Shown here: in pieces, positions 3,859-64,000 of the stretch
Position numbering within the stretch: position 1 is the first letter of the stretch
Layout: each line of letters begins with the position of its first letter
Origin: Paragordius varius
Lineage: Eukaryota > Animalia > Nematomorpha
DNA: 64,000 nt
NCBI GenBank assembly: GCA_964247055.1
Contig: OZ176053.1
Span: 11,780,001-11,844,000, forward strand
Reading direction: 5' to 3'
Program-made: the position numbers and the translations under genes
The notes under the pieces: generated by a model
Told to the model about the DNA's origin: nothing
What the model saw: only the letters and a program-made list of their open reading frames with translations
Database searches by the model: none

Positions 3859-4354
3859 TAGCGCAACTGCGGTTTTACCCTGTGTTAAGGTCTATAAACA
3901 TATTTTGTTTAAAATCGGAGACTTACAAATTTCGAATACACAAAAAATGGCATTAAGTTACTACTAGAGTTTAAACTAAAAACACTTCATCTGTTAATAT
4001 ATATCTTCTAACATAAAAAGTTTTAAATGTCATCAGTTAACAAAGTTGATAAAAAGAATCCGTTAAAATTAATTTATAGATATGATCATAAAATTTATCT
4101 GATTGTTTTGCGAAACAATAATAGTATTGTGAGTCTGTTATTAAAATTTATAATTTCGATTGACATAATGTTAATATTCAATTTTTTAAATGTGTGTATT
4201 TTATATAATTTATTTCCAAATAAATTAATTATCACATATTAGATGGCGTAATAGAAATATTACCGCTCCAAATAACAAAAAGCACTTTTAAAATTATCAA
4301 ACATACTGTAAACAATTTTAATATCCATTTATTTGATGCGTTGACTAAAGTGAT

Positions 4355-4386
<32 letters not shown>

Positions 4387-7300
4387 AAATATCAAGTATT
4401 GGAAACAATTGAAGAACCACCGGCCTTCAAAGTTCCTTTAAAAAATCTTGAAGTTTTTGAAGGAGAAACAACCCATTTTAAAGCGACTTTTGATTCTACA
4501 TCACACACTAATCTCAAAGTCGAATGGTTTTTTAACGATGAACCGCTATTGGGTATTTTTCATTATATTATAAATTCTATAGTTTTTAACCTTATTTTAC
4601 AGTTTAAAAAATTTTTTGTACACGATTAGCGTCCACAAGGTTTCGCCCAAATTTGGATGGGAATGTGGCCAGTCTGGACATAACACCGACATATAAAGAG
4701 GATTCTGGAACATACAAAATAGTAGCAAGTAACTCAGATAACCGACAAACTGCAATCAGTACAGCAACTCTCAAATGTTACCCTAAACCTATCATCCCAG
4801 CACCCAAATTTATTAGTCCTTTAACTTTGGCTGCCCCTTCAAGTGGATATTCTTCAGAAACGACTACTAACATAACCACAACCACAACAACAACAACAAA
4901 TAAAATGAGATCGGGTTCATCATCTGTGATAGAGGCCAAAATAAGCCCTGGATTGCCTGAAGATCTTGAGATTGAATGGTTTCACAACGGACGCTCCTTA
5001 ACGAAAGAATCGGCTTATAGCAGTATAGCTAGGTCCAAATACCGATTTGTTCGTGACCTTAAAAGTGGATACATTGGTTTACACAATTTGCAAGTCATAG
5101 TAAATGATGCCGGGCGCTATACCGTGACAATTAGGAATCAAAGTGGCTCAGATCAAGTAAGCGCTGATTTTGAAGTAGATCAACCGGCGGTATGTCATTC
5201 ACCGGTTCAAAGCAACTTTGTCACTCGATTTCAGACTGAAATAATTCCGGCCAAAAAGTTACCTATTTTTTGAATATTTGTTTATAATTAATTTTTATAC
5301 GAGAGATAGCTAATTCATCTATTTTACCCTATTATATATTCAACTTTCTAGATAAAATTAAGCTAAAAATTTTTTTAGAACTTCCTGACCTATACTAAAA
5401 TTCTAGATTATTTTTTGTATAGAATTGAGACTACGATTGAAACCAAAAATGATTTGGAAGTTATAAAAACTATTGAATCTGAAACATTGACAAGTTCTCC
5501 GCGTATATTACATCCTTTACGAGATTTCATCACTACCCAGCGACAATCTGCATATTTTCAATGTACGATCAGTGCACATCCAGGTTTTTAAAATACTTTT
5601 TACTTTCTTTGTTTACCTATATTGAAAGAATTAATTTCTATATTAAATGTAAATTTTAGAACCAACCATCGAATGGTATAAGGATGATAAATTACTTGCA
5701 ACAACAAGTGAATCCGCCCTTAAACCCCCTTACATAAGCACGACTGTAATGAAATCGACAGAATCCCCAGGAACCTACACGTATACACTTAAATTGGCCG
5801 AATGCTTTTTGGAGGACGAAGGTATGTATACTGCACAATTGACCAACTCAGCTGGTACCATAAGGTCAAGCGCAAAATTAACGGTTCAACAAATTAGACC
5901 TGATATAGAGGGCCCGTCATTTGTACGATCGATTGATAGCACAAGAGTGACCGAGGGCCAAACTATGTCATTCGTATCCAAATTAATCGGTAAACCACGC
6001 CCAACTGTACATTGGTTTAAAGATAATGTGGAACTGGTATCATCAAATAAATATCAGGTACAACGGTTTTCAGGTATCTAAAATTCGGAAATTAAATTTA
6101 ACTATCAATATCTATTTTACGTGATTAAATATTTAATGCAGCCGTTGATTGATCTGGAAATTATAATCGATTCCAAAGAGGTATTTAAATAAAATACATG
6201 TGCTTTACTTGTTTACAAATAATCAGTGCGGCTCAAAATTTACAATACAGTATGTACATTTTTGTTGGCCAATTCAGATTAATTTTGGCTTGGCAAAACA
6301 GTACTGTGTGTTTTAAAAAGGAGAATGTCAAAATTTACATTCTATATTATTTAATTATGGATAATTTCTTTTATATACGCTACTGTATTGCCAATAGGCT
6401 AACAAAAATTTGAATTGACTAGCATAAATGTGCATATAGTAATTAGTATTGCTTTCGGTCTGGTCTTAGAATCAATTTTATTAAAAAGTTATTAAAGGCC
6501 TTTTGTATTTTGGATGATAGCTGATTTTTAATTTGACCTTGATGCGGATGTTTTGATCGATAACTCAGTGCATTTTTTGTTACCAATTATTCGTACATGT
6601 AATGGCTTACTGTATTAATCTTAATATATAAATTAATATATAATTAATAAACATATTGTGCCAAGAATTGGGTAAAAATATAGCTTTGAAATTTTGATAA
6701 ACCGACAATTTTGGGTGAGGATATATTTTAAGCCATTCACTATTATGATTTTTAGCTATCTACTGTTATGTATAATATTTACAAAAATGTTATAGGAAAA
6801 TACCATAAGCTCAGATATTTAAAAGAACACTTTATATGGGATCGAATGACAAAATTATATAATTTTAAAAAGTGTATATGTATTTTGATGGAAATGTCAA
6901 TATTATTAGTTTTTGGATTTAATTACTTTTTTAAATAAAATATAGCTTCTTGGGTAATGTATGGATTTAAGAAAATTAATAGTTATCAGTTACTTCTAAA
7001 ATTAACTTTTTTGGTTCTAAAATATTACAGTTATATTTTTATCGAAAGATTTTATATTTAATTAATCTCAGCACAAGCCTAATAATTATGTTTATTTCAA
7101 AGGAAAGGTGTTTGTCGGGTGTAAAATACATATATTAAGAAAATATTGTATATAAATTTATTAACAAACAAACCTTCTGACAAATTTACCCATTTAGGGT
7201 TAAAAGTTAATTTTTAAAAGGTAATTTTAACACGAGCCCAACTTTTTAGATAAAGGTAATTTAATTAAAATTGTTTGAAATTTATTATTTTGTGTCATTT

Positions 7301-10300: not shown

Positions 10301-13300
10301 CGTTTATTTTAGCCCTCAGGTTTGCCTACCCTGAAAAAACAAGCACTAAAAATTCAGAGTTGAAGCACGTTTCCAAAAGAACATGTAGGCCAATTTAGTT
10401 TCAATAATGTTTTTTCATTGTTTTTACAGACGCACCGGTGACTTGAAGGTTTTCTTTCAATTTAACCCTCGGTTTTCCTCACTGTTATAATTGTTTTTTG
10501 GAAATTTGATAAATTGAAAGCAATGTTATAGAAAACATGGAAGTTAAGGAATTTTACTAATACAATTGAATTGTTCCATCAATGCTCCGACGTTGACTGA
10601 GCAATTTACGGAAAACATGTGGGCTTGTTCCAATACAAAGTGAAATTTCTGAATTCATTTTCAAATGGGCCAATCATTTTTCGAATAAGCCCCCCATCCC
10701 CCCATCACTATCCCTTTGTAAATGGGCTTTTAAACAATATTAGTTTTAAAGCTATTTTCCAAAAAATGTGTAGGCCCATTCAATTTCAAAAAAAACTATA
10801 TATTCATTTATAACGTGACAGAGCTATTTTTTATATTATTTTCTTAGTTACTCTCCATCCTTCTAAAAATGGGGTTTCGGAAAACCAAAATTGGTAATAA
10901 AAAAAGATTTCAGGAAAACGTATAGGCCAATTCTTATTCAACTTTATTTTTTCATATTGTAATAAAGGTGGCTCACAGTCATTCTTTTAAATTTACCTTT
11001 TACAGCTCCTCCTGTGTGAAAATGAAACTTTGAAAAAAAAACAATAGCTCTACAGCAATTTGCCGGAAATGAATAGACCATTTGAATTCAAAATTGGAAT
11101 TGATTAATCTATAAATGCAGATGGTGACTGAATCATTTTAAATTTTCCTTTCGGTTTTGCCCCATCATCCTCGTGTATGGTTTTTTATAAATAATGGTTT
11201 GGAGGCGATTTTGTAGAAAACAAGGCCGATTTTCAAATTTAATTGATTTCGAATTTCCTCACTTCAGCGCCGTAGGTATTAAAAAGGTTTATTAAAAATA
11301 TAGTTCGGTTTGAAATAATTTCAGATAAACTGAAAGAAAATTTTTTAATTTTATTATAAACGCCCCACGAGTGACTAAGCATTTTTAATTTTACAGCTAC
11401 TTTTATTTAATGATTAAAAATTAAGATAATTGCAAAATACAGTAACCCGCTCTTATCCGCATAATGAGTTTTTAGGCATCACTTATTAATTATGATATAT
11501 CTTTTCGAATTTTTAGTTAGGTGTTAGTTTGCTAAATCTATTCTAAACCCACTATTTTGTGGATATTTTTGAAGCCCTCAAGCTAAAAACGATAAAAAAA
11601 AAATTTTAAAAAATAAAATATAATTATGATTACTAAAACTTATTCAGATTTAATAAACCAATCGTTACTCAAAAAGGGGTCTTGATGCGTTTTAAAGCCA
11701 TATATAATCAATGGGTATGAGGAGTTATAAAGTATTAAAAGTGTTTAAAATAGAAGATAAATTATATTTTTCATTAGGTTGTAAGTCACACCTCTATAAG
11801 CTAAAAAACCTTTAATTTCTAATCTTTATTAATTTGAATTTTGAAATTATATTTATAATTAATAGCTATAAAAGCAACCATTACACATAAAGAAGAGTCT
11901 AATGAATTTACGAATTATGAAGAAAGAGTTATACCAGAATTAATATCTCCGATAGCCCCTGTATCGGTTAGTTATTTTATTGATACTGTTAAATGAAGAT
12001 TTTCCTACAAAGTTTTTATACTTTTCATTTAGTATTGAAAATGTTTCATAAACATTTTATTCATATAAAATAGGTTCCGCAAGGAGAATCTGCCACACTG
12101 ACTTGCATAATAAAATGTAAACGAGCCCCAGATATACGTTGGTACCATGGACCTAACCCAATTAACATAACAACGACAGAAACGTACACAACTTACGAAT
12201 CGGAATATAGGGAAACATATGAAAAATATGAAATGAACTATGACACCAGAGATGGCAAAGTAACGTTGCATATTCGAAACGTTCAGCCAGAAGATCAAGG
12301 CGTGTACACATGTAGAGGTCTTAACGAAAATGGTGAAGTTTCAACATCCTCCTATCTTCATGTGTTTGGTATGAAAGCATTATCTGTTTTAGTGTATAAT
12401 TTTAAAAAAGCTCTATTTTTACCTGTTAATTATAAAATTATTGTATGTTATTTTCTGATTTAGAAACCAAGACAAAAGAAATAAAAAACATTGAGGAAAC
12501 TAAGAACCTTTTTGTTAAAGAGGAACATTTTATGCCAGAACTTGTGAGCCCTTTGCCACCCATATTGGTACTAAACTATTTTTACCTATAAATTAACCAA
12601 TCTATTAGGGCTTAATTTTTATTTTCCCAAAGAGATTAATAAATTATTCTTATTTTATTAAATATTACATCGTATGTAAGGCTAAAAAGGGGGAAACAGC
12701 TACCCTAACATGCGTAATAAAGAGCAAGCGTCAACCACAGATCCGGTGGTATCATGGGACAAAGCCAATTATTATTGAAGAAAGTAGGACAATTCATACG
12801 ACCCAACATATCGAAACGTACGAAAAATATGAATCAATTTATGAAAAGTCTAATGGTAAAATAATTCTACGCATCCGCAATGTACAACCAGAGGATCAAG
12901 GCTTATATACATGCAAAGCGGTTACTGAAAATGGCGAAGTCTCTACGTCGACCCAACTTCAAATCGAGGGTTTGGTTTTCACGATAGCTATATTCTTTAA
13001 TTGATTGCATTGCTTCCGATTCTGGCCCGACATTTTTTAATAAATATTCTTATATATTAAAGATGATTTTTCTTATATCTATTTTTATTTTATAATCTAA
13101 TATTTAGAATCAGTTAACATCCGTTTAGATATTTAAATTAATCACTATTTTTAATAATTAATAAACACATTTGCAAGTTTAAAAACTATTTATTGCACAA
13201 TGAAAGCTAGAAAAACTTTTTTTAATATTTCAGAAATTAAATATATTTACTAAATTGATTGACGGCAAACTATCTACTAATAAATGAACTGAGTAATAGA

Positions 13301-16300: not shown

Positions 16301-19300
16301 ACATACATAATGTTCAACCGCAAGATCAAGGACTTTACATCTGTAAAGGAGCTAATGAAAATGGGGATGTTTCCTCATCTACTCACTTACATGTCGAAAG
16401 TATGTCCTTTGTGATAAGACGAATAAATAATATAAAGAATTTTAGTTTGGTGGCAAAGTTCAAAAGGCTATGTGAGGATATATTTGTTAGTCATAGGGCT
16501 AATTAAATTTGATTGATTCGAGAATTTAATGGTTATATTTGAAAAGTTGGATACATTCCAATCTTAATCACTTGGGTAAACAATTTGAAAAGCCTATATA
16601 AAACAATTACAGTAGCGTGGTAAAAAACAACAAATGGTTGTAAATAACCATTTTTTCCCTATAATTTCATTTGTGTGATTAATTTTCGACTAACATTGCT
16701 TTTTACCATACGCCACTGTATTACATACTAATTGTTATAAATAACTATAAATATTTTTGATATAACATTCATAATTTAAAATACGACAGTAGATTAAAAT
16801 TTATCTAGTTTCCAGCATTCATTTAGCTATTCAAAAAAATAAATATTGATTATATTATTTAAGTACATTATATAGCATTATAACGACAAGAGATGCCATG
16901 TAAAAATCAAATCAAAATTTCAATCTAAAATTTAATTATTAAAGGTGATAACTTCTTATAAAAAAATTATTTACAAAATTTTATGTAAATAATATAGAGA
17001 AACAAACCATAACAACCATAGACGAAGAACTTGAGTCTAAAATGGATGAAGTTATTGTTTTGCCCGAAGAAAAAATGCCCAGATTAATTAGCCCTTTACC
17101 ACCAATTACAGTATATCAAACAAACATTTTTTATATTATCAAAAACCTAAACTTTTTAGCCGTTTTATGTTATGTGATGATTAAAGGTTTCGGAAGGAAA
17201 GACCGCCACGCTAACTTGCGTGATAAAAAGCAAATCGGCTCCACAAATACGATGGTATCATGGCCCAAGGCCCCTAAATTTGTCGGAAAGAACGATCGTC
17301 GAAACGGCTGAAAATACTGAGGAAACATTTTACAAATATGAAATGGATTACGATATGACAAGTGGAAAAACCATACTCTACATTCGTAACATACGACCGC
17401 AAGATGAAGGTTTATACACATGCAAGGGCGTCAATGAAAGCGGTGAAGTCACTTCAACCACCTACCTAACTGTTACAAAAAGTATATTTCTCTTTTAAGC
17501 GCGTAATTGACATTCACACATGTATAATAAATTGACAATATTAAAGATGAATTCAAAATACTGTTATAATTTTGAAATATATTATTTTTTTGCACAGATA
17601 AAATTGAAGAGACAATCATCGAAGAATCTGAATATAGTGAGATTATCCGAGTAAGTTCAGCTTAAATATCCTAAATTAAGAGTTTCTTTCAAATTACTGT
17701 TTTCTTACTAAACAAAAGGATTAATTATAATTAATTATTTTTAAAATATTTACAATCTATTTATTTAGTTATAAAAATTATTTAACCAATTCCAAATGGT
17801 TAAAAATCATTGTAAAATATAAAAATTAGAACGAATCATCTAGCCCGGATGTTGTTGATAGTTATCATCAAATTTCCTCGCCAGAGACCCCGCGAAAAAA
17901 GTTGCGTGGAGATTTGGAAGTGACAGTGGTTATTGAACCGACTGAAACGGAACTCATATATGAAAAACCGATTTCCCCTCAATTAATAACGCCTTCTCCA
18001 ATACAAAGCCTTGTTGAAGAGACTATTACGGAATCTCATGAGAAAAAACATCAAAATTTTGTTGAAACGATTTTGGTAGAAAAATCGAGTTTACCTTCCA
18101 TACCAATTGAATATGTGACTTATACGGAGCCTGAACCGATAAATGTGCTAACGAAACAAATTACTGAAGAAACACAATATGTAATTGAACGACATGTACC
18201 AGTGGTATATAAAACACATTTTAACCATTTAATAGCCAAGATTAATGTGACCAGATAGGATGTTTTTCGCAGTACAGTACTGGGTTTTCAGCCTGTATAG
18301 CGCCCACTATTGTACTGCTTTTTGAAATTGAAAAAATTTAATTTTTTAAAAATATTCATTAATTACCTTTTATTTGAAATTCATTTTAGAATTTAATATA
18401 GGACCCTTTGTAAAAATAGCCCCATAATTTGTAAAGAAATGGTTCATTTTACGGTAAAAACTAAGATTGGCCTATTTTTAATTGGTTAATAATTTATTTT
18501 CTGCTCGAATTATACATATTGGGTTTTGGATCGGTCAAACTGCTTAGGATTGCAGCCTTTCGTGCAGTGGCGAAACTATAAATCCCCACTTCACCGTAAG
18601 ATTCAGGCTAAAGGCTTTTTCACTCATGGCTTTCGCAAAAAGAGACCTAAAAATTCAATATTAATAAAATTAATTTATGATAGTTTAATAAATATTTGAT
18701 CAGGTTAAGAAAGTTCATTTTTTGTTTAAATTATCAAATGGGAAATAGAAAATTGTATTCCCGCATATTATTCAAAATTTATTACATATGGCATATGATT
18801 TTGAAATAACGTGTTTTCGTATTAAAAAATTAGTTTTTTACGTTTTCTATACTAATTTGGTGGTAGAGATGATATTTCTTATTTTTTTCCTAAACTTTAA
18901 TTTTTATTAGTTTTCTTATTTTTTACATAAACAAATTTGAGATACTTTGTTGAAGCGTACTTCAAACTTTTTGAAGAATGATGGAAACGGTATAACGCTA
19001 TAATATATAATTAAACCCTTTTTCTAAATAATTCGATGATGTTGAACATTACTATAGGTAATTTAAAGGTTTGCTTTCTTGCATTTAAAATTTTTTGTAA
19101 AACACAATAATTCTGAGTGAGGAAACCGTTTATATCGTTTCCATCATGCTGAAAATAGTATGAAGTATGCTTCAACAAAATTTTGTTAAAAAATAGATTT
19201 AAGTATGCATTTTTTAAAAATATAGATATCAAAATTTAGCTTATATTTAAAATTATTACACAATGTCGGAATTTTTGCGTTTTCTTTGGAGAACAGTTCA

Positions 19301-22300
19301 TTTTAAAAAAGCTAAAAAATTTGGGACTTTCAGAGCTTACATCCAACAATTTAAAAAATTTTAATATAGTTTTGCTTTTTATGTATGGTTTATATATTTT
19401 AGTGATATTTTTTGAAATAAAGCACTTAGCTTTCACCAAAAAATATATATGAAAAAATTGCGCACCTTTTGCAATTTTATACGGAGCACCTACCACAAAA
19501 GTGTAAATAATTTTCTTTAATAACTCGTAAAGGTTAAAAGCGCCATGATAATCCTGATATTTTCCTATCATATATATTTCATCAGGATATTTTTTTGTGG
19601 AAACTTTGTAATATACCACACCGATGGTGTAAAAACAGGCAAAGTATGTTTTAATTTTGTACTGCGTCCTTAAAAATATCTGGTCACATTAGCCAAGATT
19701 ATTTGATATATTATAACAAAATTTTAATATAACAAAATTAAACAAAATCATATTGTTTAAACATGGTATTTAATCCGTTTAAAAACTAAAATTTTTAAGG
19801 AATAGGCTAAATTAGTAAATACATATCTATTATGCATATTTTTTATATATCTTCAAGGAACGGGAATACGCTGTTCTGCATTCACCGTATGTGGTGAAAC
19901 CATTACAAAACATAAAAGCAATGGATGGACATTCGGCATGTTTTGAATGCGTAATTATTGGCCGTCCTGTCCCACAAATAACATGGTACCATGGGACTAA
20001 ACAGATAACTGAATCTAAGGTCATATATTGATTAATAAATAGCAAATTTATATAGCCCAAATCTGATATAATATAAATATTTGCCCTTAAGTGGTCTGAT
20101 TTGGGCGATCTTATAATTTAATATGGTATCCATGGGTCGGTGTTTAGCGTTTAATTTTTGTCTTACAAATAATTTTTCGTAGTAAGCCGTAATATATAAG
20201 TGAGAGAAGTTTATTACAATTATAAATTATAATATAACTAACTCATTTCTATTACTCAAAATAATTGTTAATTTTTAGACTATGATATATTACTAAATTT
20301 TTATTTTTTTCGCAACAAACCATATCATTTACATATGTTAAATTTTGAACTGGTATTAGGTGACAGTGGGATTCAAGAATTAGACCTTAAAATATCTACT
20401 ATTTAATATAATTTTATCTAAAACAGGATATATAATTTAATTATGTAACCGGTTAAAATGTGAATATGAGTAGTTCTAATTAAAAAAACTATTAATAGGA
20501 ACTAATGATCCGTTTATTTCAGATAATATTCCTATAGTATCAATATTATATTTTCATCTATTTCCAGATTATTGATTTAATATTTGAAAATAGGAATTTC
20601 AAACGTTGCAAAGATCTGATGGAACATGTCTGTTATTTATACCTGAAGTATTTCCTGAAGATGAAGGCGGGTATACATGTCGCGCAGAAAATAGCGAAGG
20701 ATTTACGGAAACCTCGGCAACTTTGAAAGTTGAAAGTGAAAATTATCCTTTTTACTCATTTATTAAAAAATTAAAATATAATGTAATATTTACTTGTCCG
20801 GGGATGACAGTTGATCAAAATATGCAGCTTAGTAGCATAAATCTACGCTTAACATACGACGACCTAACCATTATGCTACCACGCTTTAATTTAGAAACAC
20901 CAATTAAATTATTATTATCTATTGTTTTATGTAGGATAATGTGTTATTCTTTAATTGTTGTTCGTTTTAATCTACTAAAATCTGGATGAAAATTGATATT
21001 ATTCGTTAACTTATTAAAGAAATCAAAACCATTATCAAACACAGCGACAATTAGTTTCATTTTTAAATAATGGGTAAAAAAAGCTTATTTGAGTTCAATT
21101 ACATGCGCATTGTAGGAACTTTGGTGTTTGTTATATTTTTACTTAGATTATATAAACACTTAACTAACTCTAAATTAATAGAATTTTCATACCTGGCTGA
21201 TCGTGAAGAGGCATCCACAACTCAAACATACACGCGGTCTAAACGGTCAAGAGATTGGTCCGATGAAGTCGAAATACCAATTTATTCCAAACGAACTGAA
21301 GTTAGCTACGAGGATAATACCTATGCCCAAGTATCTGAGGAAGAGTTAATCAAAGACACGGAAGAAAAACATTTACCCGAATTACCTAAGTCTGTTTGAT
21401 TTATAATAGAATAAGGGCTTCAGTTGTATATAAAATTTTAGTAAGAAACATTTTAACTTTTCATCGACGATAATATATTAAAGTCTGCCTTGATTGAAAA
21501 ATTCATAATCTTTAAATTTATATTTATCACCATTACTTCCACTATGTGTTAAAATCTTATATAATTTCTCTTATCTAAAATTTGGTGTCGCCTTAATGGC
21601 TAACCTACCTCAGAATTTTATTAAATGAATGGGGTTAAAACTTAGATATGGATTAATTCTTAAATTGTTTTATGTTTAATGAATATCAGTAGGTAAACCA
21701 TTATATTTTCAAAAAAATTATTACATAGTTATATTTTACACAAATAAAAACACGTTTATTTCGATGTTATAGAGACACTTATCTTCCTATTGTAATCAAA
21801 ACAATCTCAGCCCCTAAAACTGAATTCGTATCATCTTCAACAAGCGTAGCTGAATCAACTTCAACCACGAAAACGTACCAGGATGAAATCTATGAAACAC
21901 ATATTGAGCGCAGACCTTTGAGATTTTCGCAACCTCTTCCGACTCATATCATTGCACGAGAGAAAGATACCCTAAAATTTAGAGTTGTGTGTCCTTCCGA
22001 TCATGGACCGCTAATTCAGATAACTTGGTACAAGGACGGCAAATACATTCAACCTGATCAAATTTTAAGCGAGGCTGAGGAACGTAGTCCTACAACCTCT
22101 CCATTCCCTACCCGGGATATGTCGGAAAGGAACAAAGTCATAATGAAAACTATTGTTAATGTACACAATGAAACTGAAACAGTATCAGAATTGGTTGTTC
22201 GAAATATCGACACTATGGCTCAAGGATATTATGAATGCCAGGCGGAAGATGGATTTGGAGAAAAGGCGACCACTGGGACACATCTTACAGTGTTTCCTGA

Positions 22301-25300
22301 GGAATCCTACATAAAAGGTAAGGTGATCATTAAAAAAAATTGTAAATCTTCCCCATTATGTGAATCAGATGGTGGAAACCTGAAATTTAAAAGTTATTCT
22401 GAGTGCAGTTTTATCGTAAAAGATAATGATTACAATAAAAAGAATTCCCTCCTAACGACACACGATATTGTGGAAGTTGTTGACTCACCCGAGTCCTATT
22501 TATCGTCTGTCAAGTTGGTTAAAGATTTGCCTAAATTTAACGAAGAGGCATCAGAACTTTCGGATGCAACGATGTTTGAACCCAAATTTACAATTATAAA
22601 AGCACTAATTATTTTAAGCTTAAGTGTTGCTCTTTATTTATTTTACGCTTATGTACCGCCAAAATTGGTTTAATTACCAGATATTTGACATATGTTAAAT
22701 CAACAAATATAATTTATTTGATGCTTTTTGAGATCAATACAATCACAATTTCAAAAATAAACATTATTTGCATGTATAACGATTTGATATATGTAATAAA
22801 AATTGTAAGTAGGGTTATAGGTTTAGCATTGAGATGAGGAATTTAAATATTTCGCATAAAATGAGGTCCAATTATGCTCTTTTTAGGAATCGAAGTGATT
22901 GATTTAAGCTTAAGTTACCTATATAATAAATAAATATTATTAGATATTATGTTTTTTGAATGCATTAAGGACAAAAGTGTCCAACACAAATAGGTTCATT
23001 CAAAAAATAAATGGGCATTAAAACATAGTGTATTAGTTTTCAAACATAAAAATTACTAACACAATTAAAAACTATTTTTTTACCAATTTTTGTTAGTTCA
23101 CGCCAAAATTAAAGTACAAATGTTTGCGAAATATCAATTTTATTAAGATTCATATAATAAATAGCAAAAGAATAGAATTTACTATTTTAGTTTCACAATT
23201 TTTCCTGAGCCGCACAAAATATATCGGGCGCTTACCCCTGATTCAGGATGAGTTTTCCTAGTTTGTACGCTGTTATCGGCATTATTTTCCCAAATATTTA
23301 GATAATAAAAAGGGCAAATTTTGGAAAAAATGTACAATTTTTTGAATATTATTTTATGTAGAAACTGTCCAAACAGTGGAAGAAGGAATGGATGTTGAGA
23401 TAAGCATTTTTCTAAGCGATTTCAATCACATATATTTGCCCGTTGAATGGACATTTAATGATAAACCATTATCATCGGATTCCAGCGTTACACCAAACAT
23501 TGAATATGTTGGCCTGCCAGGTGACAGCTCCCCTGAAAGAAAACTTGTAATACGATCCGTACGTCAAGAAAACTCTGGGGTATACAAATGTACCATAGGA
23601 GATATCACCACTCAAGCCACTTTAGATGTCATCCCATGTATGAAATAATCCATTTTTTATTTTTGGACCTATTTATTAGAAGTATAAAATAGGAAAGACT
23701 TATATTTCATTTCAATATGACAATAAAACCATCATCAGCTTATCTATTATGTATTAAAAAAGTTGTAATATTTAACAATGTAAATTTTAATATGTTGGTT
23801 TTAATCTGTTTTATTCGTTTGATACTACATGACTAATGGTTCAACATTATTGTAATATCGATACGTTTACTAACAACTTATTTTCAAAATGAATAGCAAA
23901 AAAGTTATAATTTTGATTTTACGCTAAAATATGCAACCATTCTAATTAAATATACGATAATAGAGGTATTTAAAATATTTGGGTGCTATATGATCTTTTT
24001 CTTACTGACATTTTCCAAATTTTAAAATAAACTCTTTATTTAACTACTTTATTTAACATCCATATTTTAATAATATCAAAATATAATTGGTCTTTAAATA
24101 TATGAAGGATTTACCAGTCCCTCAAAAAATGTTCCGCGTGTTACTAAAAAAAAGGCATATTTTATTGTTAAATAAAAAAAATTATGGTTTCCCCCGTTCC
24201 ATAGTTTATAACCGTAGTAATAGAATTTTAACATTTATATCCAAATATATCCATTTTTCAAATATATTAATTTTAACCCCAAATATAAAAAAGTCAACGC
24301 TTCCAAATAAATTTGAATCATGGCTACACCTCGGAAAATTTAGTTAATTAATGCCCGTTTATGCCGCTATAATTTTGTTATACTTAGCATACAGACCATA
24401 TATTGTTTTATTATTTGATTTTCAATGCATATCCCATAGAATATGGCATCCACCATTTTTTAAATTATAAAACAATAGAAAGTTATGATTTCATTTTTAA
24501 ATATTATTTTTTGTTTCACACCAGGCTTGCAAACAACTACTGGTACCGATGAATATAGCTCCAATGAAATAAGGAGAGATATAGAAATTGGTAAAGATGT
24601 TGAAATTACACTCTATTTTTCGAATCGATCTCAAACCCCAAATTTGCGATTAACCAAAAATGGCGTTCCTCTCGTAACAGAGGTTGTGTCCCAAGCCCCA
24701 TTGAATGCTCACACTTATATGTTAGCTTCTTCAAATTATCAAGAAAATACTGTCAAAATTTTTATACAAGATTTCAATGAATCCAAACAAGGGATTTATG
24801 AAGTATTTGATGAGCAGGAATTTACACTGGACCAACGTAAACCAATTAAATCCACTCAACCAGTCCTAACATTGCATTTATATGTTGATAAGGGTATGTG
24901 TGATGCCTTGATATTCATTATATTTTAACAAATTTTTTACTTGTGTTTTTTTTAACTTGGTTATTCTCAATCCTAATGGATTCGAATGAAATAATAAATA
25001 TGGTTTATATAAACTTTAAGCGACATATTAGCCCCCTTTTGTGCGACAACTTTTATTGCAAAAAATTCGCCGAATATATAATCAAATCATAAGCAATATA
25101 TATTTAAACAACCTTCAATATCACAAAATAGGTTAGGATAAAGCTCATGCAAATTATTAGTATTACAGTAAAAACCAATGTAAATTGGGGCCACAATTTT
25201 TTCTATGCGCCAAAAAGATGTTTAAGCTAACATATTCCTTTTAAATTATATCTCTGCCTTTAATATTAATTAAGAATCAAGGATAATGTAATGAAGGCAC

Positions 25301-28300
25301 CCGTTTCTTTGAATAGAATAGAATTATTTATTCCAAATTTTTCGAATATTAATCGATCTTTAAAAAAGTATAAAATAGTTGAGTTTCAATAGTTTGTATG
25401 TATCTTTTTTCTTAAAAAATACAAAAATAATAAAAAATGACCGTATCGATTACAATATAAAATCGATTTGTGTATAAAAACATATATTGGATTATGTGGT
25501 ACAAGGTCAATCAATCAATTCAATGCATGTTTTGACTGTAGTTTTATCCTTGACCATTCAACATATATTAATTAGTTAAAAACTTGGCTAAATGAATATG
25601 TTTATTTCATTTTTTATGGGTTAAGTTACATTACAATCAATGTTAATATAGACTTAAATTTTTAGTTTTTAATCAAATAAAAATGGCTACACGGGAATAA
25701 CTAATTTTAATTTTTGCAATCATTAATTAAGATGCGAATTACTTTATTTCTATTTCTACTGTGCACTCCTACAATCAAAAAATTATTAGATGCAACAAAA
25801 CAACTAAAAATCAATAAATGTATATTCGTTGGGATTATTTAACCTGAAAGATTTATTTATTATGTTGCATAAAATACTCTCTTCCTATGAATCATGTTTT
25901 TGAATATATTTTTTTCATTATCTCAAATTTTGCATTGTATTTGTTTTTTGTTTGTTTTTGGCGTAAATTTATTTTAAAAAAATTAAATCAGAAAAAAATA
26001 AAATATTATCAGGATCTTTGATTAGGCGTCCTAAAATTGAATGTGTCCCCAAAAGCCACATATATGAAAAAGTTCATGCTAAGATATGGGAAATATATGA
26101 TAATTAATTATTATATATATTTAACGAAAATCGTTCTGTTAACAAGGTTAAATTTTAAACAAAATATATAATATACTCTTGGAAAAAATGAAAAAAAAAT
26201 CATTAAATGTTGTTCAATAAACATGATTGGGAAACACCCGATGTTTATCTGAAAATTAATATTTTTTGTAATGTTATGTGAATATATAAAATAATAGAAT
26301 TAAGTTTATATATTTTTCATTTAATTTTATGTGTGAAAATTTTACACCAATTTTAATCCGACACTTCCTGCAAAAGTAATTTATTTATTTAAATTTCTTT
26401 TGTTTTAAATCAATTTTGGAGTTTTATTATCAAGCATATTTTTGTTGGCCTTTTTATTTTTAAAAATATTATATTAATTTAATACTTTTAGATAACTTTA
26501 TACATGGCTTTAGGTTGACAATAATAATTACGAATTTTGCAATTGTGTAAAATTTGTGACAAGAGCAACTATATTTCCTGTTTTTTATTATATTTTTTTA
26601 TGAGACTTAAAAGTTTTGAGATTAACTAAAACAAAATTTTGCTTAAAACAATAGGGATTAATTTTTAAAACCTTCGTTTAAATTCAATAACATAGATTTG
26701 ATGAAACTTCCCAATATTATCAACATATATTTATTGGTAACAGAACAATTTCGGGCTTTAATCGCACAAACTTTTAAACCTAAAACATGTATGTATGTTT
26801 CATTGTATTTATATGTTAGATATTAATGCACATGTATGTATATATATATATATATATATTTGTAATAATATTTAATTGATCTAATATTTATGAATATCAG
26901 TAGTTTTTTATTGGAATATGTGGAGATAATATTATTTATATAAGTTTTGAAAACCAATCAATATAATTAATTAATTGCATTACATTGTATTTTGGTACTA
27001 AATTCAACTATCTCTAACTATACTAATGTTTGGACATTTTCCATTCCTTCCAAACTATCAAATGCATACACATAGTCTTTAAATACATTCCGCCTTTCAA
27101 AAAAAAACCCCTTATAAATAGTCATTTGACGAAAACATGAAATCGCGACAGGAAGGGTCTTTGGCCAAACGTATGAGGCCCATTCCATTAAATGAAATAA
27201 CAAACCTATCAAATTATTTTACCGGACAAAGTTTTCAACTTCCAGACAATAGCCTAATAATGACAGATAATGCCACGAATATCAATGGCCAGTTATTAAA
27301 GGATGATCCTGAAAAGATTACTGCTTACATTTTATCCAATGAGATAGCGGGTCAAGATCCACAAACTGAACAAAATAGTTTATATAATGATAAGGAATAT
27401 GTTGGACCCATTTCCATATTCACCTTTCACGAAAATATATTTGACTGTAAACCAAACAATGACAGCTTTACGGCAAAAGAATTTCCGTTTCCCTATCATG
27501 CTGCCACAGAAAAGGCTCAAACCAGCGAATTGTTTGATGATTTTTTTACAGCCGATACATATGATGCCTATAATAATGCGAGCCATGCATATAACATTGC
27601 CCATGAGCGACCAATTTTGCAACCGACTGCGCAAAAAATCAATGAAATTAAAGTCCAATTTGATTCGAACAATCCTAACACACACATCGAAGGGTATGAG
27701 GGCATGGAAAATTCGATAATTGAAAGTATTGAAGAAAGTATGAAAAAATATAAGGAAGCTTCAATGCCGGAAGATGGTTCATCCTATCCTCCCTACTTCA
27801 CACGTGTCCTTCTGCCACAATTTGTGCATGAAAGTTATGAGAGTAAATTTTGGTGTGAGCTTAAAGGCCATCCCAAACCATACGTCGTTTGGACAGCTGG
27901 AGGTGCAGAAAAAATTAAAAGCTTTGGGCAAAATAATAGCCCACCACCACCTAATCAAACTACAGTTTTGCATACAAACTTTGGTAGTTCTCATTTCCAT
28001 CGTGAAAGCATAGAACTAGCATTGGGTGAGAAAACACGATTCTCCATAACTTATGATTATCCCAGGAGTGAGTTAACAATTTTTAAGACAAAACTTAGTG
28101 ATGCAAATATCTACACCTGTGAAGCAATAAATGAAATAGGTAATGCATTGACATCAACCTCATTAAATGTGTGGCCTTTAAACAATGACATAATCGGAAT
28201 CAATGGTTTACCGTTGAATGAAAATGAAAATAAAAACCAAAAAAGAAAACACCGAATTCATCGAACAACTAAAATTACAAATATTATCCAGGAAATTCTT

Positions 28301-31300
28301 GCGGATCAAACTATTTTGGAGGATGATAGCATGGAAACGGATGCGGCAGAAGAAGAAGAATTAACAAACATTGCAATAAATGAAATAAAAATTGATTTTG
28401 ATGAAAATGAAATGAACTCAGAACTGCTTGCATCATTATTACAAAATATTGAACAAGATATTCCATCTTGTCCTGAAATATTAACAAAACCAAAAATTAA
28501 AAAGAAAAAACGAACTACCCCCTATAATTCTAGCACGGATACATCATCGGACGAAGAAACAATGGGTAAAAAAATTAAGACGGAAATTATGTTAGATAAA
28601 ATACCATATGGATCTCTTGATACTGATGAAATAACCCTAGCAAATAAAACTGATATTGTCAAATTTTCGGAAGAGATAAAAGATGCCGTAACTTTAAAGT
28701 GTTTGGAAGAAATAACAAAAAGAAGAGTTGATTCAAATAAATTTTCTGATATTGATATTAAAGTGAATGTTGAAGAGAGTGACGGAGACGATCAAAATCC
28801 ACCAAGGTTTGTTCAATCACTGAATCCAATATATGGTCAAAAAAATAAAAATATTATTATGAAATTGAAAATAAAAGGGAATCCCCCACCTCAAATTAAT
28901 TGGTATAAAGGGCCGGATCAAATTTTAAATGATCACATTGTATCGATCGGTGAAATGGAAAGCATTATTGAATCAGCAATTGCAAGCTTTTCTTTAACAA
29001 ATAATATGGCAGACGTTGAAAACAGAGGCGACAATCTGTTGACAAAAAAAATTTTATATTCATATAAATATCCGGACATTTTATTGTTCATACAAAATGT
29101 TGAAGAGTCGGACGAAGATGTATACACATGTGTGGCACATAATGATTTAGGCAAAGCTACCACATCGGCTTATCTAAAATTGGCTGGAGAAGGTTGGTTT
29201 ATGCATTTATAAAATTAAAGACGCGACTTTTTATATAATAAAGTAAGGATTTGGCATTGGATTAGTAAATAAATTTATGTCTTTTAAAGACCAAATTATG
29301 TGGATTCTGATAAATTCAATAATAGCCGATAAAAACATGATAAAAATATATTTATAATTTTTTCGATAAAAAATGAAAATGATTATGCAAAGTCTTTCAA
29401 GGCAAACATACTCAAAATTTGATGTATAAACACTGATGTTTAAATTTTTATAACATCATTCTTAATCAGACTATTGGCACATTGTATTTTTGCATATATT
29501 TTCGATTATAGACACGAACATATTCTCGAACTTAAGATTAAATAAATTAATTATGTGTGTATACCTAGCATGAAAGGTAATATTTTATCATTAATCTTAT
29601 CACCCCACACCGTTGTTTAATAGTTTGATTATATATTTATATAAATATTTTGCTTTTTGTAGGAACACAGCCGGATACCACAACTGATGAAATTAGGATG
29701 AGAACTTCAACCATTGATGAATCCCGGTTCTCTGAAACTTCTATCATACGTCGGAATTCAAGAGATGACACGCTATCCTCACCCCAGTTGACAGGGGCAC
29801 CTATCATTCTTTCCCCCTTGAAAGATGGACACTTGGTGTTAGATGCATCAAAATTGCGTGATCAGGATATTATAATTCGTTTGGAGACTTGTATTGGTGG
29901 CCAGCCCAGACCAAAGGTCACATGGTACAAAGACGGGAAAAAAATTGAAACTTTAATACGTAGCTCCGAAGAAACGTACAAACAATTGTTTGACATCTAT
30001 GAAGAGCAGCAAGACAATAAATACATATTGGAGATTAACTTATCCCACATTTTGGACAGCCCAAGAGTGTTGGGTAATATAAATGGCACTTATACTTGTG
30101 TAGCCACAAATTACTATGGCGAATCATCCACTTCCTCAAAAATAATTATTCAAATCGGTATGTTTACCATTCGTTTTACATAGTTATATTATGCTATAAA
30201 TATAAAGAAGCTTTCCAGTATTTTTGCTATAAAGACACAAATCAAATGGTTTTTTATTTCTCTAGACACAAGCACTCACCCGGAAACTACATTAAAAGTA
30301 ACTATTGATAAAGATCAACCAGATGTCACATTTGAAGAAAAACAAGGGGCTGATAAAATTTGGGCTTCAGATTCAGAAAAAATCGAAGTTAAAGAGGAAA
30401 AGCTATATACTTCTCCGGATCATGGAATTTCGCCTACAAAAGCTCCAATATTTACAAAACCTCTTGGTAGCCAGGTAAATTTGATTGTATAATAACTCTT
30501 AAAGCATACCTCGTAAGTTCATAACTTATGATATAACCAATGATATCAGTTTAAAATAAAAAACTTTTACCTTATAGTTGATAAATCAATTTCTATAAGC
30601 CATATTAATCTATGAATCAGTATTTCGATTTTAGTATTGAAATTTTTAATTATCATTATTTAATATATTATTAATGACCAAATTTTTGAATAGAGGACAA
30701 TGATATTATCAAAAATCGCATAAAACGATTATAGGTTGCGGCTTTTGCCCAAATTTTAATCAATATTAAAATTTTTGAATATTTGGATAAGCCAAAAAAC
30801 TGGGAATTAATTAGCAATTACCGGATTATTTTTCCAACATTTGTATAAATAAACATATGTAGTTATGACCGACCTACATGTTCATCGGTTTATAATCTAA
30901 TAGCGAAGTTATTAGTAAAATTGGCTATTTAAGATTAGCCCTAAATTTAAGTAATGAATTTTTCATTTATTTTTATCAAAGATCGAGACTAAGATTCACT
31001 CGTAAAAAATTGTTTTTATTATTGTATATTAAATTTTAATTATTTTGCATTTTGATTGAATTATTTTATAGAAATTTCGACTCGTTGCCAAATAAAATGC
31101 ACAGATTATATGAGTCAGATTAAAAATCATAAATAATATTTTGTATTTTGTTATAATAAGTGTAAACGGATAATAAAAAAATTATTTGAAAAAGCGAATG
31201 ATGTCTATAAAAATACAAGAGCTATCTATTATCTGTAATTACTTCGCCCTAGTTTCTATAAAAGAATATTTGGCCCCAAGTTTAAAACAATAAGTTTTAA

Positions 31301-58958: not shown

Positions 58959-61900
58959 TCATGTGCCCTGTAACATTGGTTATATTTGATGAAAAACAAT
59001 ATTTACATTAGCACCAAAGCCCCAAATTACTCAAAAACAGGTGGTGGAGTTGGAAGAAGGAGAACAAATGGAACTTTCTGTTACATTATCCCGACCGGTC
59101 CCCGTTGAATGGAAAAAAGACCAGGTTCCAATCGTTGAAGGCCCAAGAATTCACGTGGTGGATCAGGGATTAACACAAAAGATTGTGATTGAGGATGTGG
59201 AACAGGAAGACAGTGGGACCTACACGATTGAATATGATAAAAAGATTGTTCCCACCGAAGTCATTGTCCATCCCAAAATTAAAAGTAATCAATTAAAATT
59301 AATATAATATAAATACTAATAACACAGTGCATAATTTATTATTATTATTATTATTATGGGGCTTTGATAGGTTTGGATAAACCTAGCCTCTTTTCTTATA
59401 TATTTTCATTAAAAACACCCATAAAAATATTGGATTATAAAATTGGCATGCCTCTTTTTAACTAGTTAGTGTATAGGTTTTAAGCCTATATTATTAAAAA
59501 TAATAATAAAAAATTATAGTATTTAATTTTTGAAAAAATTAATTTATTTAGCACCAACGCATGTTACCGAAACACACACCGTTGAAATTGAAGAAGGGGA
59601 AAAATTGGAATTGAGTATCACTTTACCGAAACCTAAAACATCCGTAATTTGGAAAAAGGATGAAACGCCCATTACAGAGACTCCCAGAATACAACCAGAA
59701 AATCTTGGAACAGTGCAGAAAATTGTAATAGAGAGCGTGGAAAAAGAAGATAGTGGGACCTACACAATAGAATACGATAATGTTAAGATTCCTACACAAG
59801 TTATTGTTCACGCCAAAACTCAGGGTAATATTAATAATAATGTGAATGCATAAATTTTTCCATGAATTTTTGTAAAGACTCTAGTATAATTAGATTTTGT
59901 AAAAGGAATTGATATGATATGTTGATGTGTTATATTTTAGCAATATAATTAAGATATTAAAATATTAATCATGTACTTTACCTCAAAGTAACGAGAATGT
60001 TAACGTTAGTTTTAACTTGTGTAGTGTAGGGAGGTTAGATAATTTACACTTTTATTACAATATTTTCTAACAATTTACGATTTTATCAAATTTTATGTTA
60101 ATAAGTATATTAATATGCAGGCAAAAAGCCCCAAGAAATTATTCGTAAACCTGCTGTAGTGATAACTGAAGGTCAACCCCTAGTATTGAGTGTCCAGGCC
60201 ACAACTAGTAAACAACCGAGTGTATGGAAAAAGGATGGAGAAATTATTAGGAAATCAACACAAACCGAATTAACAGAAGATGAATGGACTCATACATTAA
60301 CGATTCACAAATCCAAATTAACTGATACGGGCGAATACACGTTAGAAGATGAAGATCGCAAAGTTGTTACTGAAGTCACTGTTCTGCGTATGTTTTCTAA
60401 ATAAAGATTGCAAATAATAAGTTTAAAATTTATTTTAATATGTCAATAATTTAGACAAAAAACATTGTTGAAACTTTAAATTGCGATTTTTTGCACTTAA
60501 ACAATATATTGTGTTTTAGCCGCTAAAGATGGATTTGAAATCCCCTTGAAGGACATAAATATTGTTGAAGGCCAAAACCTTAAATTGTTGGTTAAAATTT
60601 TGCGACCCGTATCGCCTAACGAAATTACATGGAGAAATAATGAAACAATTTTAACCGAAACTACCACAGATTTTGAACGTTATGTTTTCGACCATAAAGA
60701 TGATATATATTATACATTGATCATCAAGGAAATTAAGAAATCCGAAGAAGGGACATATACCTTCACATATAAAGACCAGGAAACCAAAGGATATGTCAAA
60801 GTTTTCAGTAAGTTAATTTTCAAACACTGATATATATTAAGTTTTAATCAAGCCAAACAATTAATTTATGCTATGTGTTATGCAGGCGTTCCTTCCCAAC
60901 CCACTAATCTTGAACTCGAGCATCAAGGTACGAATATAGTATTCAAATGGAATCAACCAGATTCTGAGGGTGGGTCACCAATTACAAGTAATGATTATTT
61001 TTGCACAAAAATTATAAAAATATGGGAAAAATATAATTATTTATAAGAAACGATAATATATTTGAGTAGGCCTATATAAAAAACTTATTAATCAATAAAA
61101 CAATCAATAGGAATTATTTTATAAATACCGCATAATATTTGGCTAAGAAAAAAATTTTTTTTCTCTTTTAAGATGTTTTATTGCTATTTATCAATCCTAT
61201 ATGCCATTTATCATATAGATTATACAATTGAGATTCGAGACAAAAGCAAAGAAAATTGGATTCAAATTGCAAATGTGGATTCAGAAACATATTCCATCCT
61301 CCTTACAGATTTGTCAGATCAGAAAACTTATAGAATTCGCGTGCGGGCCATAAACAAGGTTGGACCAAGCAAACCGGCAGAACTTGGACAGGATTTGAAA
61401 ATTACTGTTACAACTAAATCAGGTTATACTAACAATTCATCAGAAGGATTTAAGTTTGATGCTTAATATTGTCATTGTATATGTTTGTAGAGTGATCAAA
61501 ACATAAAACTTTTATACTCTATAATAAAGTTAAATTGCACAATTTTTCGACACCCAATTTATATCAGCTTTTTTTGAAATAAGAAAAAAAGAGTCTATAT
61601 ATATACCGTTTTATTTTTTGTATCCAGTTCCTTCACCACCAAGGAATCTCAAAGCATATCCCAAAATTGAACAAAATGAAATCCAATTAACATGGGATAT
61701 ACCGGAAACGGATGGTGGTTCCCCCTTAATTGGGTACATTATTGAACAAAGATCCGCAAACAGTCAACAATGGAAATCTGTTACGACGATAGAAGAGCGC
61801 TTAGATCAAACTCACATAGAGTATTCAATTGATAGAAACATTGAAAGAGATGCAGAATATTATTTCCGTGTATTTGCTTACAATGATGTAGGAACAAGTT

Positions 61901-63541: not shown

Positions 63542-64000
63542 ATGGAAAGCAATAACTCTAAAATAAGCTCCCGTAATTTACCAATAAATATGGCGACTAG
63601 GAATATACGTGGCAGTTCTGATAACAAATTGGATATAATAATTCGCGAGATGAAACGTTTAAACATCCATGTGTTAGGGCTGTCGGAGACTCATATGCAA
63701 CAAAACTCACCCAAAATATACGACAATTACTCGTTTTATAACTCAGGCGGGGAGCTCAAACGAAATGGATGCGGTTTCTTAATATCGAATTATCTTGCCG
63801 AACATACCGATATATATAGACCTATCTCCGATCGAATTATATCCCTACGAATTAACACGAGACCCTAGGCTATAACAATATATCAAATCTATGCTCCCAC
63901 GAGTGTCTCACCCGAAGACAAATGCGAAAAGTTCTATAATGAGTTACAAATGGCTCTCTGTGAAACATCCAAAAAAGACATAACTTTCATCATCGGCGAT
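63542..64000 (+). mobile_element. Non-LTR retrotransposon (RTE-like) AP-endonuclease 5' fragment, inactivated; runs off the window
   Basis: ATRNIRG...VLGLSET...GCGFLI...SDRIISLRI...*AITIYQIYAPT...FYNEL...FIIGD; the same frame continues past the TAG at 63866-63868. Confidence 0.85.

Follow-up and report, generated by a model that had tools for sequence, protein, structure and literature searches.

Kettin is a short isoform of Drosophila sallimus (sls) that arises by alternative termination (PMC11081514), and Novex-3 is a short isoform of vertebrate titin generated in the same manner (PMC13649281). The candidate isoform described here resembles both of these products, in that a giant sarcomeric Ig-chain gene would yield a much shorter N-terminal isoform by termination inside the gene, and it departs from both in the nature of its end: kettin and Novex-3 have soluble ends and bind partners, with no transmembrane segment described, whereas the candidate ends in a predicted membrane anchor. 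Alternative termination is a known mechanism in titin-like genes; a membrane-anchor ending would be new. The first-pass annotation had presented such an anchored isoform as novel for the family and, in keeping with this, full-text literature searches found no tail-anchored or transmembrane titin-like isoform. Novex-3 binds obscurin, a protein with a place in the attachment of myofibrils to internal membranes.

In vertebrates, the link between myofibril and SR involves soluble obscurin, which binds the small membrane protein sAnk1.5 (PMC2172649). The job proposed for the candidate is similar, inasmuch as a giant Ig-chain protein would tie the contractile lattice to the SR membrane. However, the obscurin-sAnk1.5 link requires two proteins, whereas the candidate would combine Ig chain and anchor in one polypeptide, and no sequence similarity was found between the two systems. 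To our knowledge, most of what is understood about the register of SR and other organelles with the contractile lattice comes from vertebrates, and we know of no established account of this link for most invertebrates. The KASH proteins nesprin, ANC-1 and MSP-300, which are very large cytosolic filament-binding proteins that a single C-terminal helix fixes in an internal membrane, demonstrate that a protein of giant size can be tail-anchored; they are built from spectrin repeats and end in KASH, whereas the candidate is built from Ig domains and the KASH signature is absent. A further parallel is found in the membrane and secreted forms of the immunoglobulin heavy chain, in which the outcome at one donor, splicing or use of an internal poly(A) site, decides the presence of an anchor. 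There, however, the membrane form derives from distal exons of a type I secretory protein, while in the candidate the anchor would belong to the proximal end of a cytosolic protein.

The window analysed, a 64-kb stretch of the Paragordius varius genome, is AT-rich (GC 0.21-0.37 outside one repeat array), and its plus strand, on which all features described below reside, is occupied by one very large gene composed of Ig exons, unique linkers, an array and Fn3 exons. The array covers 15 kb in 25 two-Ig units with introns of 30 and 32 nt, and disulfide cysteines are absent from its 50 Ig domains; the Fn3 exons are found at the far end of the window (Fn3 at 61618-61992). Pfam I-set matches occur in more than 15 exons, and about 11 Ig domains in the window precede position 22317. 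These upstream domains keep two cysteines and match Robo, DCC and contactin as well. Among solved structures, those of titin, cardiac MyBP-C, obscurin and myomesin match the Ig domains of the gene best, so that its product can fairly be called a titin-like sarcomeric protein, and the identity given to the host gene in the first-pass annotation is supported. By domain make-up (I-set chains, PEVK-like linkers and Fn3), the gene belongs with the titin, sallimus-kettin and TTN-1 type. No kinase domain was found within the 64-kb window, and the N-terminus of the gene, with any signal peptide, lies beyond the window edge. Word searches with 251-aa and 691-aa pieces of the gene returned no protein match in the searched length range.

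Several other features of this gene may be recorded here. The unique exons 17902-18258 and 21067-21396 are rich in Pro, Glu, Val, Thr, Ile or acidic residues and have no Pfam match; the former is a Pro/Glu/Val/Thr-rich, PEVK-like linker, and both may represent PEVK-like spring or linker segments between Ig domains. Intron sizes span a wide range, from 30 and 32 nt in the array through about 77 nt (4553-4629) and about 109 nt (30158-30266) to much longer ones, the two intermediate introns having weak donors (G|GTATTT and G|GTATGT) and standing amid far longer neighbors. Exon 27122-29209 (2.1 kb) encodes two or three Ig domains together with long unique sequence, and contains an ATG at 27137, just five codons past the preceding stop, which may mark an internal start, or an alternative promoter product, of the giant gene. 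At the far end of the window, ORF 63542-63868 encodes an endonuclease/exonuclease/phosphatase domain (Pfam E 1.9e-04) and is probably the 5' part of a LINE-type retrotransposon, situated inside or just past the gene.

The region of interest begins at an Ig exon (21773-22317) that encodes a Ser/Thr-rich linker and one complete I-set Ig domain (Pfam I-set E 2.9e-07), with the acceptor ttatag| directly before 21773. It ends, AAAG|GTAAGG, at a phase 1 5' splice site (aag|GTAAGGT, 22318-22326, GT at 22318-22319). The consensus donor reported after this exon in the first-pass annotation is indeed present, and is the top consensus match in the window (score 7.4, the next phase-1 site scoring 5.9). 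Because this genome uses weak donors, the automatic donor map, built on a generic consensus matrix, is noisy, and it was used only to rank 22318 as the best consensus site. The next Ig exon (23360-23640 together with its acceptor AG), also phase 1, has Pfam Ig_3/I-set matches and begins at 23362, after the acceptor tttatgtag| (AG at 23360-23361). Judged from the sequence, splicing of 22317 to 23362 would keep the frame, with G(22317) and AA(23362-23363) forming a Glu codon. We therefore predict the exon at 23362 to be the splice partner of 22317 in a long isoform, and exon 21773-22317 to be the last exon common to both predicted isoforms.

Beyond the donor, the frame of the Ig exon remains open for 117 sense codons (22320-22670) before a TAA at 22671-22673. 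This agrees with the stretch of about 118 stop-free codons noted previously, and the C-terminal peptide given at that time matches the translated sequence exactly. The likelihood of 118 open codons is 1e-5 to 8e-5 when estimated from base composition, 1.5e-4 from shuffling of the stretch itself, and 1.2e-3 empirically from the minus strand of the window, so that the earlier judgement of a frame improbably long for its AT-rich background is borne out by each of the three estimates. Read-through tails past other likely donors in the window mostly run to fewer than about 40 codons, a comparison in which the automatic choice of donors is unreliable. The GC content of the extension (0.326) falls between those of the Ig exon (0.406) and the flanking introns (0.23-0.255). 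Overall, these findings confirm the extension as a real feature, beyond chance.

Two measures of coding potential were applied to this extension. In one, codon log-odds were trained on other exons against the unmasked non-coding sequence of the window; in frame, codons 1-89 of the extension score 0.27, against 0.02 and 0.06 for the two remaining frames. By this measure exon windows average 0.389 +/- 0.104 (the adjoining Ig exon scores 0.47 in frame) and non-coding windows -0.165 +/- 0.109, with 0.25% of the latter reaching 0.27. The other measure uses only base frequencies at codon positions 1-3 and assigns to 22371-22586 a frame likelihood advantage of 19.7 bits, compared with 18.65 +/- 7.56 for same-size windows of exons and -2.5 +/- 5.8 for those of introns; none of 812 intron windows, which were picked by hand, was as high. 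In a sliding profile, scores are at exon level as far as about 22275, close to zero across 22290-22400, and back at exon level at 22410-22560. The hydrophobic part that follows has an intermediate coding score and a frame advantage of +4 to +6 per 60 nt, the frame signal extending to about 22640. At the stop codon, from 22665 onward, coding log-odds drop to -9 to -12, and base composition falls to intron level at this same point. Long read-through frames elsewhere in the window (20594-20986, 701-994, 4354-4626 and 12074-12460) have non-coding scores directly after their exons. The core of the extension (about 22410-22586) thus equals true exons in the strength of its frame-specific coding signature, with the full signature at 22423-22586, the core of a unique C-terminal region in which no known domain is recognized. 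The part of the extension that precedes the helix encodes an 89-residue linker that is mildly acidic (pI 5.4) and rich in Ser, Asp, Glu and Lys. The extension accordingly behaves as coding sequence in its core, in the frame of the Ig exon, but not in the first 50-105 nt after the donor, which do not look coding.

Other sources of this coding island were considered. An antisense gene was ruled out, there being no minus-strand ORF of at least 40 aa over the tail. A transposon fragment was rejected: no repeat or transposon copy was found, and tblastn and blastn detected no second copy of the tail within the window. The extension contains a single in-frame ATG, at 22572, five codons before the helix, and the island could therefore not be a separate gene without upstream exons. 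With no antisense ORF, no other copy in the window and the sole ATG placed so near the helix, the island is best read as coding sequence of host-gene transcripts.

The manner in which such transcripts might reach the alternative end is less straightforward than the simple read-through first envisaged. The segment 22318-22422 is open and non-coding-like, and is a candidate short in-frame intron. Two acceptors would preserve the frame: cag| at 22368 (a 51 nt intron), which is the better consensus acceptor, and aaaag| at 22422 (a 105 nt intron), which is the better fit to the score profile; either one joins G to AT and so specifies Asp at the junction. Since coding signal is missing from the first 50-105 nt, and since introns as short as 30, 32, about 77 and about 109 nt occur elsewhere in the gene, the tail may form an alternative last exon of its own instead of arising by plain read-through. 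While the openness of the frame is in accord with termination by read-through, a short in-frame intron followed by a separate last exon would fit the coding profile at least as well. All three routes (read-through, 51-nt intron and 105-nt intron) lead to the same C-terminus. With plain read-through as the route, so strong a donor would promote splicing at the expense of intronic polyadenylation. A terminal exon is the consistent reading of the tail, since inner donors are poor (22624), located at the very start of the stretch, or out of phase and lead to stops. Two AATAAA hexamers, at 22756 and 22795 (83 and 122 nt past the stop), are possible poly(A) signals that count for little, because ten such hexamers occur in the 800 nt examined.

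The C-terminal end of the tail conforms to its earlier description as a run of about 22 hydrophobic residues with a short tail. The predicted transmembrane helix (22587-22655) comprises 23 residues, tail residues 90-112 of 117, with one Lys near its start followed by 18 uncharged residues; after it come only five residues, Pro-Pro-Lys-Leu-Val, and the TAA stop (22656-22673). The Kyte-Doolittle mean over 19 residues reaches 2.26 at tail residues 90-108, and sums on a Hessa-type scale, which serve only as a rough guide, are -0.95 to -0.3 for 17-19 residues. A single-sequence AlphaFold model of exon plus tail has a mean pLDDT of 40 and is poor even for the Ig domain; its sole confident element is a helix at residues 271-293 (pLDDT 75-92), corresponding to this segment. 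The sequence thus has the single transmembrane segment no more than about 30-40 residues from the C-terminus, with a short following tail, by which tail-anchored proteins are recognized. On the other hand, a hydrophobic end alone is weak evidence in AT-rich DNA: among open runs of at least 35 codons in such DNA, 8% end with a 19-residue mean of 1.9 or more and 2% attain 2.26, while three further read-through ORFs of the window have hydrophobic ends too. It is only the genuine look of the surrounding exon that gives the helix meaning. A read-through from another Ig exon (20594-20986) runs for about 80 codons into a hydrophobic stretch, yet has non-coding scores. A KASH domain was rejected for the candidate, which has just five residues past the helix, ending in Pro-Pro-Lys-Leu-Val; a terminal Pro-Pro-Pro-X is lacking, Pfam shows no KASH match up to E 10, and nothing in these features points to the nucleus. 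With a fairly hydrophobic anchor and one basic residue in the tail, ER/SR would be the default target that we infer.

Comparisons with known proteins returned no relative of the tail. Family scans (Pfam, E up to 10), a PDB sequence search and the ESM atlas gave no meaningful match, a protein word search gave none, and an exhaustive search of 1.84 billion representative proteins gave no credible relative. The single match in the last of these (P0001) is spurious, being a 5572-aa bacterial repeat adhesin for which 27 weak matches to a 46-residue stretch were summed. As a control, the 691-aa two-Ig exon of the gene was submitted to the word search and was likewise without a match; since an exon of the gene is equally blank, the blanks obtained with the tail carry no weight.

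Seven public sequencing runs contain the locus, none of them on record as RNA. Read contigs of four runs cover introns like exons and contain no exon-exon joints, as DNA would, and in runs of the same species label that were guessed to be RNA, none of the sampled locus words was present. Among the polymorphisms listed, both of the two in the tail are non-synonymous (Lys to Ile and Phe to Ile), while synonymous changes make up seven of 11 in the two Ig exons on either side of it (three of four in exon 21773-22317); the numbers are too small to decide. No indel is found among the listed variants of 21773-22673, and six are found in 22910-23012. At 20764-20831, within an intron, the contigs of four runs are broken and left with loose ends, suggestive of an insertion/deletion polymorphism or a repeat there. 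One run (X4), bearing the same species label and belonging to the same study as the likely source, is about 5% divergent over 19800-25000 with many indels, its contig over 21521-22783 showing 22 substitutions and 24 gap letters; this sample may come from a divergent population or a cryptic species. A preprint (10.64898/2026.02.03.703548) reportedly deals with misidentified species among the open data for Chordodes.

These features may best be combined if the stretch serves a giant sarcomeric Ig-chain gene of the titin/kettin-like kind as an alternative last coding segment. Most transcripts would splice the end of the Ig exon at 22317 to the Ig exon at 23362. In a second class, the sequence as far as the stop at 22671-22673 would be retained, in full or minus an in-frame intron of 51 or 105 nt, with cleavage and polyadenylation soon past that stop. 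The short product of this class would consist of the N-terminal Ig chain, an unstructured linker of 80-90 residues, one C-terminal transmembrane helix and five further residues; in a tail-anchored topology, it would be inserted after translation, leaving the Ig chain in the cytosol, a placement to which the titin, MyBP-C, obscurin and myomesin matches of the gene and the lack of disulfide cysteines in the 50-domain array lend indirect support. Expression of this product, the choice between the two ends, its membrane insertion and the target membrane are what we infer from the genomic sequence. That a real alternative terminal exon gives rise to a tail-anchored short isoform of the titin-like gene is, in our estimate, about evenly balanced between true and false. 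The broader proposition, that a giant sarcomeric Ig-chain protein anchors itself in an internal membrane (SR/ER, possibly outer nuclear or mitochondrial) by means of an alternative 3' end, is put forward more tentatively, at somewhat below an even chance.

The principal rival to this scheme holds that the extension specifies no functional product, being a frame that is open by chance or the relic of a former exon or gene end, and is represented, at most, in unspliced or unproductive transcripts. Such a reading is congenial to the absence of synonymous changes among the two listed tail variants, to the non-coding look of the first 50-105 nt and to the commonness of hydrophobic ends in AT-rich read-through, and with more than 1600 windows of the genome scanned, rare chance frames will turn up. 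It is harder to reconcile with the periodicity and codon tests, which are largely independent of openness and which place the core of the extension among true exons, at levels seen in none of the 812 intron windows and 0.25% of the non-coding windows, or with 117 intact codons whose score drops exactly at the stop; we consider it unlikely, if still deserving of attention. A less probable arrangement would divide the locus between two genes, such that an upstream Ig-chain gene always ends at 22673 with its anchor and the Ig array downstream is part of a different transcript. A signal peptide on that upstream product would make it a conventional type I membrane Ig protein whose cytoplasmic tail has five residues. 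In favour of this arrangement, the long exon at 27137 opens with ATG right past a stop, and upstream Ig domains keep two cysteines and match Robo, DCC and contactin too. However, the exons at 23362 and about 24560 start in phase 1 without a start codon, the splice from 22317 to 23362 is in frame from the strongest donor in the window, and the upstream linkers are PEVK-like, as in titin-type springs, so that we regard this division as improbable.

Two further readings retain the coding signal and differ in what surrounds it. The island might be an internal alternative or extended exon that is spliced onward, for example from the phase-1 GT at 22624, so that the hydrophobic stretch would be cut or placed away from the C-terminus and no membrane anchor would result. 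A segment 22369-22623 would indeed measure 255 nt with phase 1 at both ends, and the gene does use weak donors (G|GTTTTA and G|GTATCC). Against this, taa|GTGTTG at 22624 makes a poor donor, the remaining GTs in phase 1 are confined to the very beginning of the stretch, and donors of any other phase would meet stop codons in the following exon. The frame signal continues to about 22640, with composition shifting only at the stop; the likelihood of onward splicing is accordingly put very low. Lowest of all, and scarcely credible in our view, is that the ATG at 22572 begins a 33-codon micropeptide gene in the intron of a muscle gene, encoding a single-pass protein of the type that regulates the SR calcium pump. 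The position of this sole in-frame ATG five codons ahead of the helix invites the comparison, and a 33-codon ORF resembles that class of micropeptides in size and topology, yet the coding signature upstream of the ATG would be left unexplained, and Pfam gives no sarcolipin or phospholamban match even at E 10 (a chance TRAP_alpha match has E 0.31). With no family profile matching the 33-residue peptide, a SERCA micropeptide was rejected.

From the perspective of the titin-like family, the alternative terminal exon, if real and used as proposed, would provide its first membrane-integral member, and would extend the role of alternative termination in these genes beyond the soluble ends of kettin and Novex-3. 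It would also constitute a one-protein counterpart of the vertebrate obscurin-sAnk1.5 link and, as such, a simple and testable answer, in at least one lineage, to the question of how the SR is linked to the contractile lattice. Should this ending be private to horsehair worms, it would amount to a lineage-specific curiosity in an animal without genetic tools; if similar exons occur in other ecdysozoans, the annotated introns of sls and ttn-1 would be worth searching for them.
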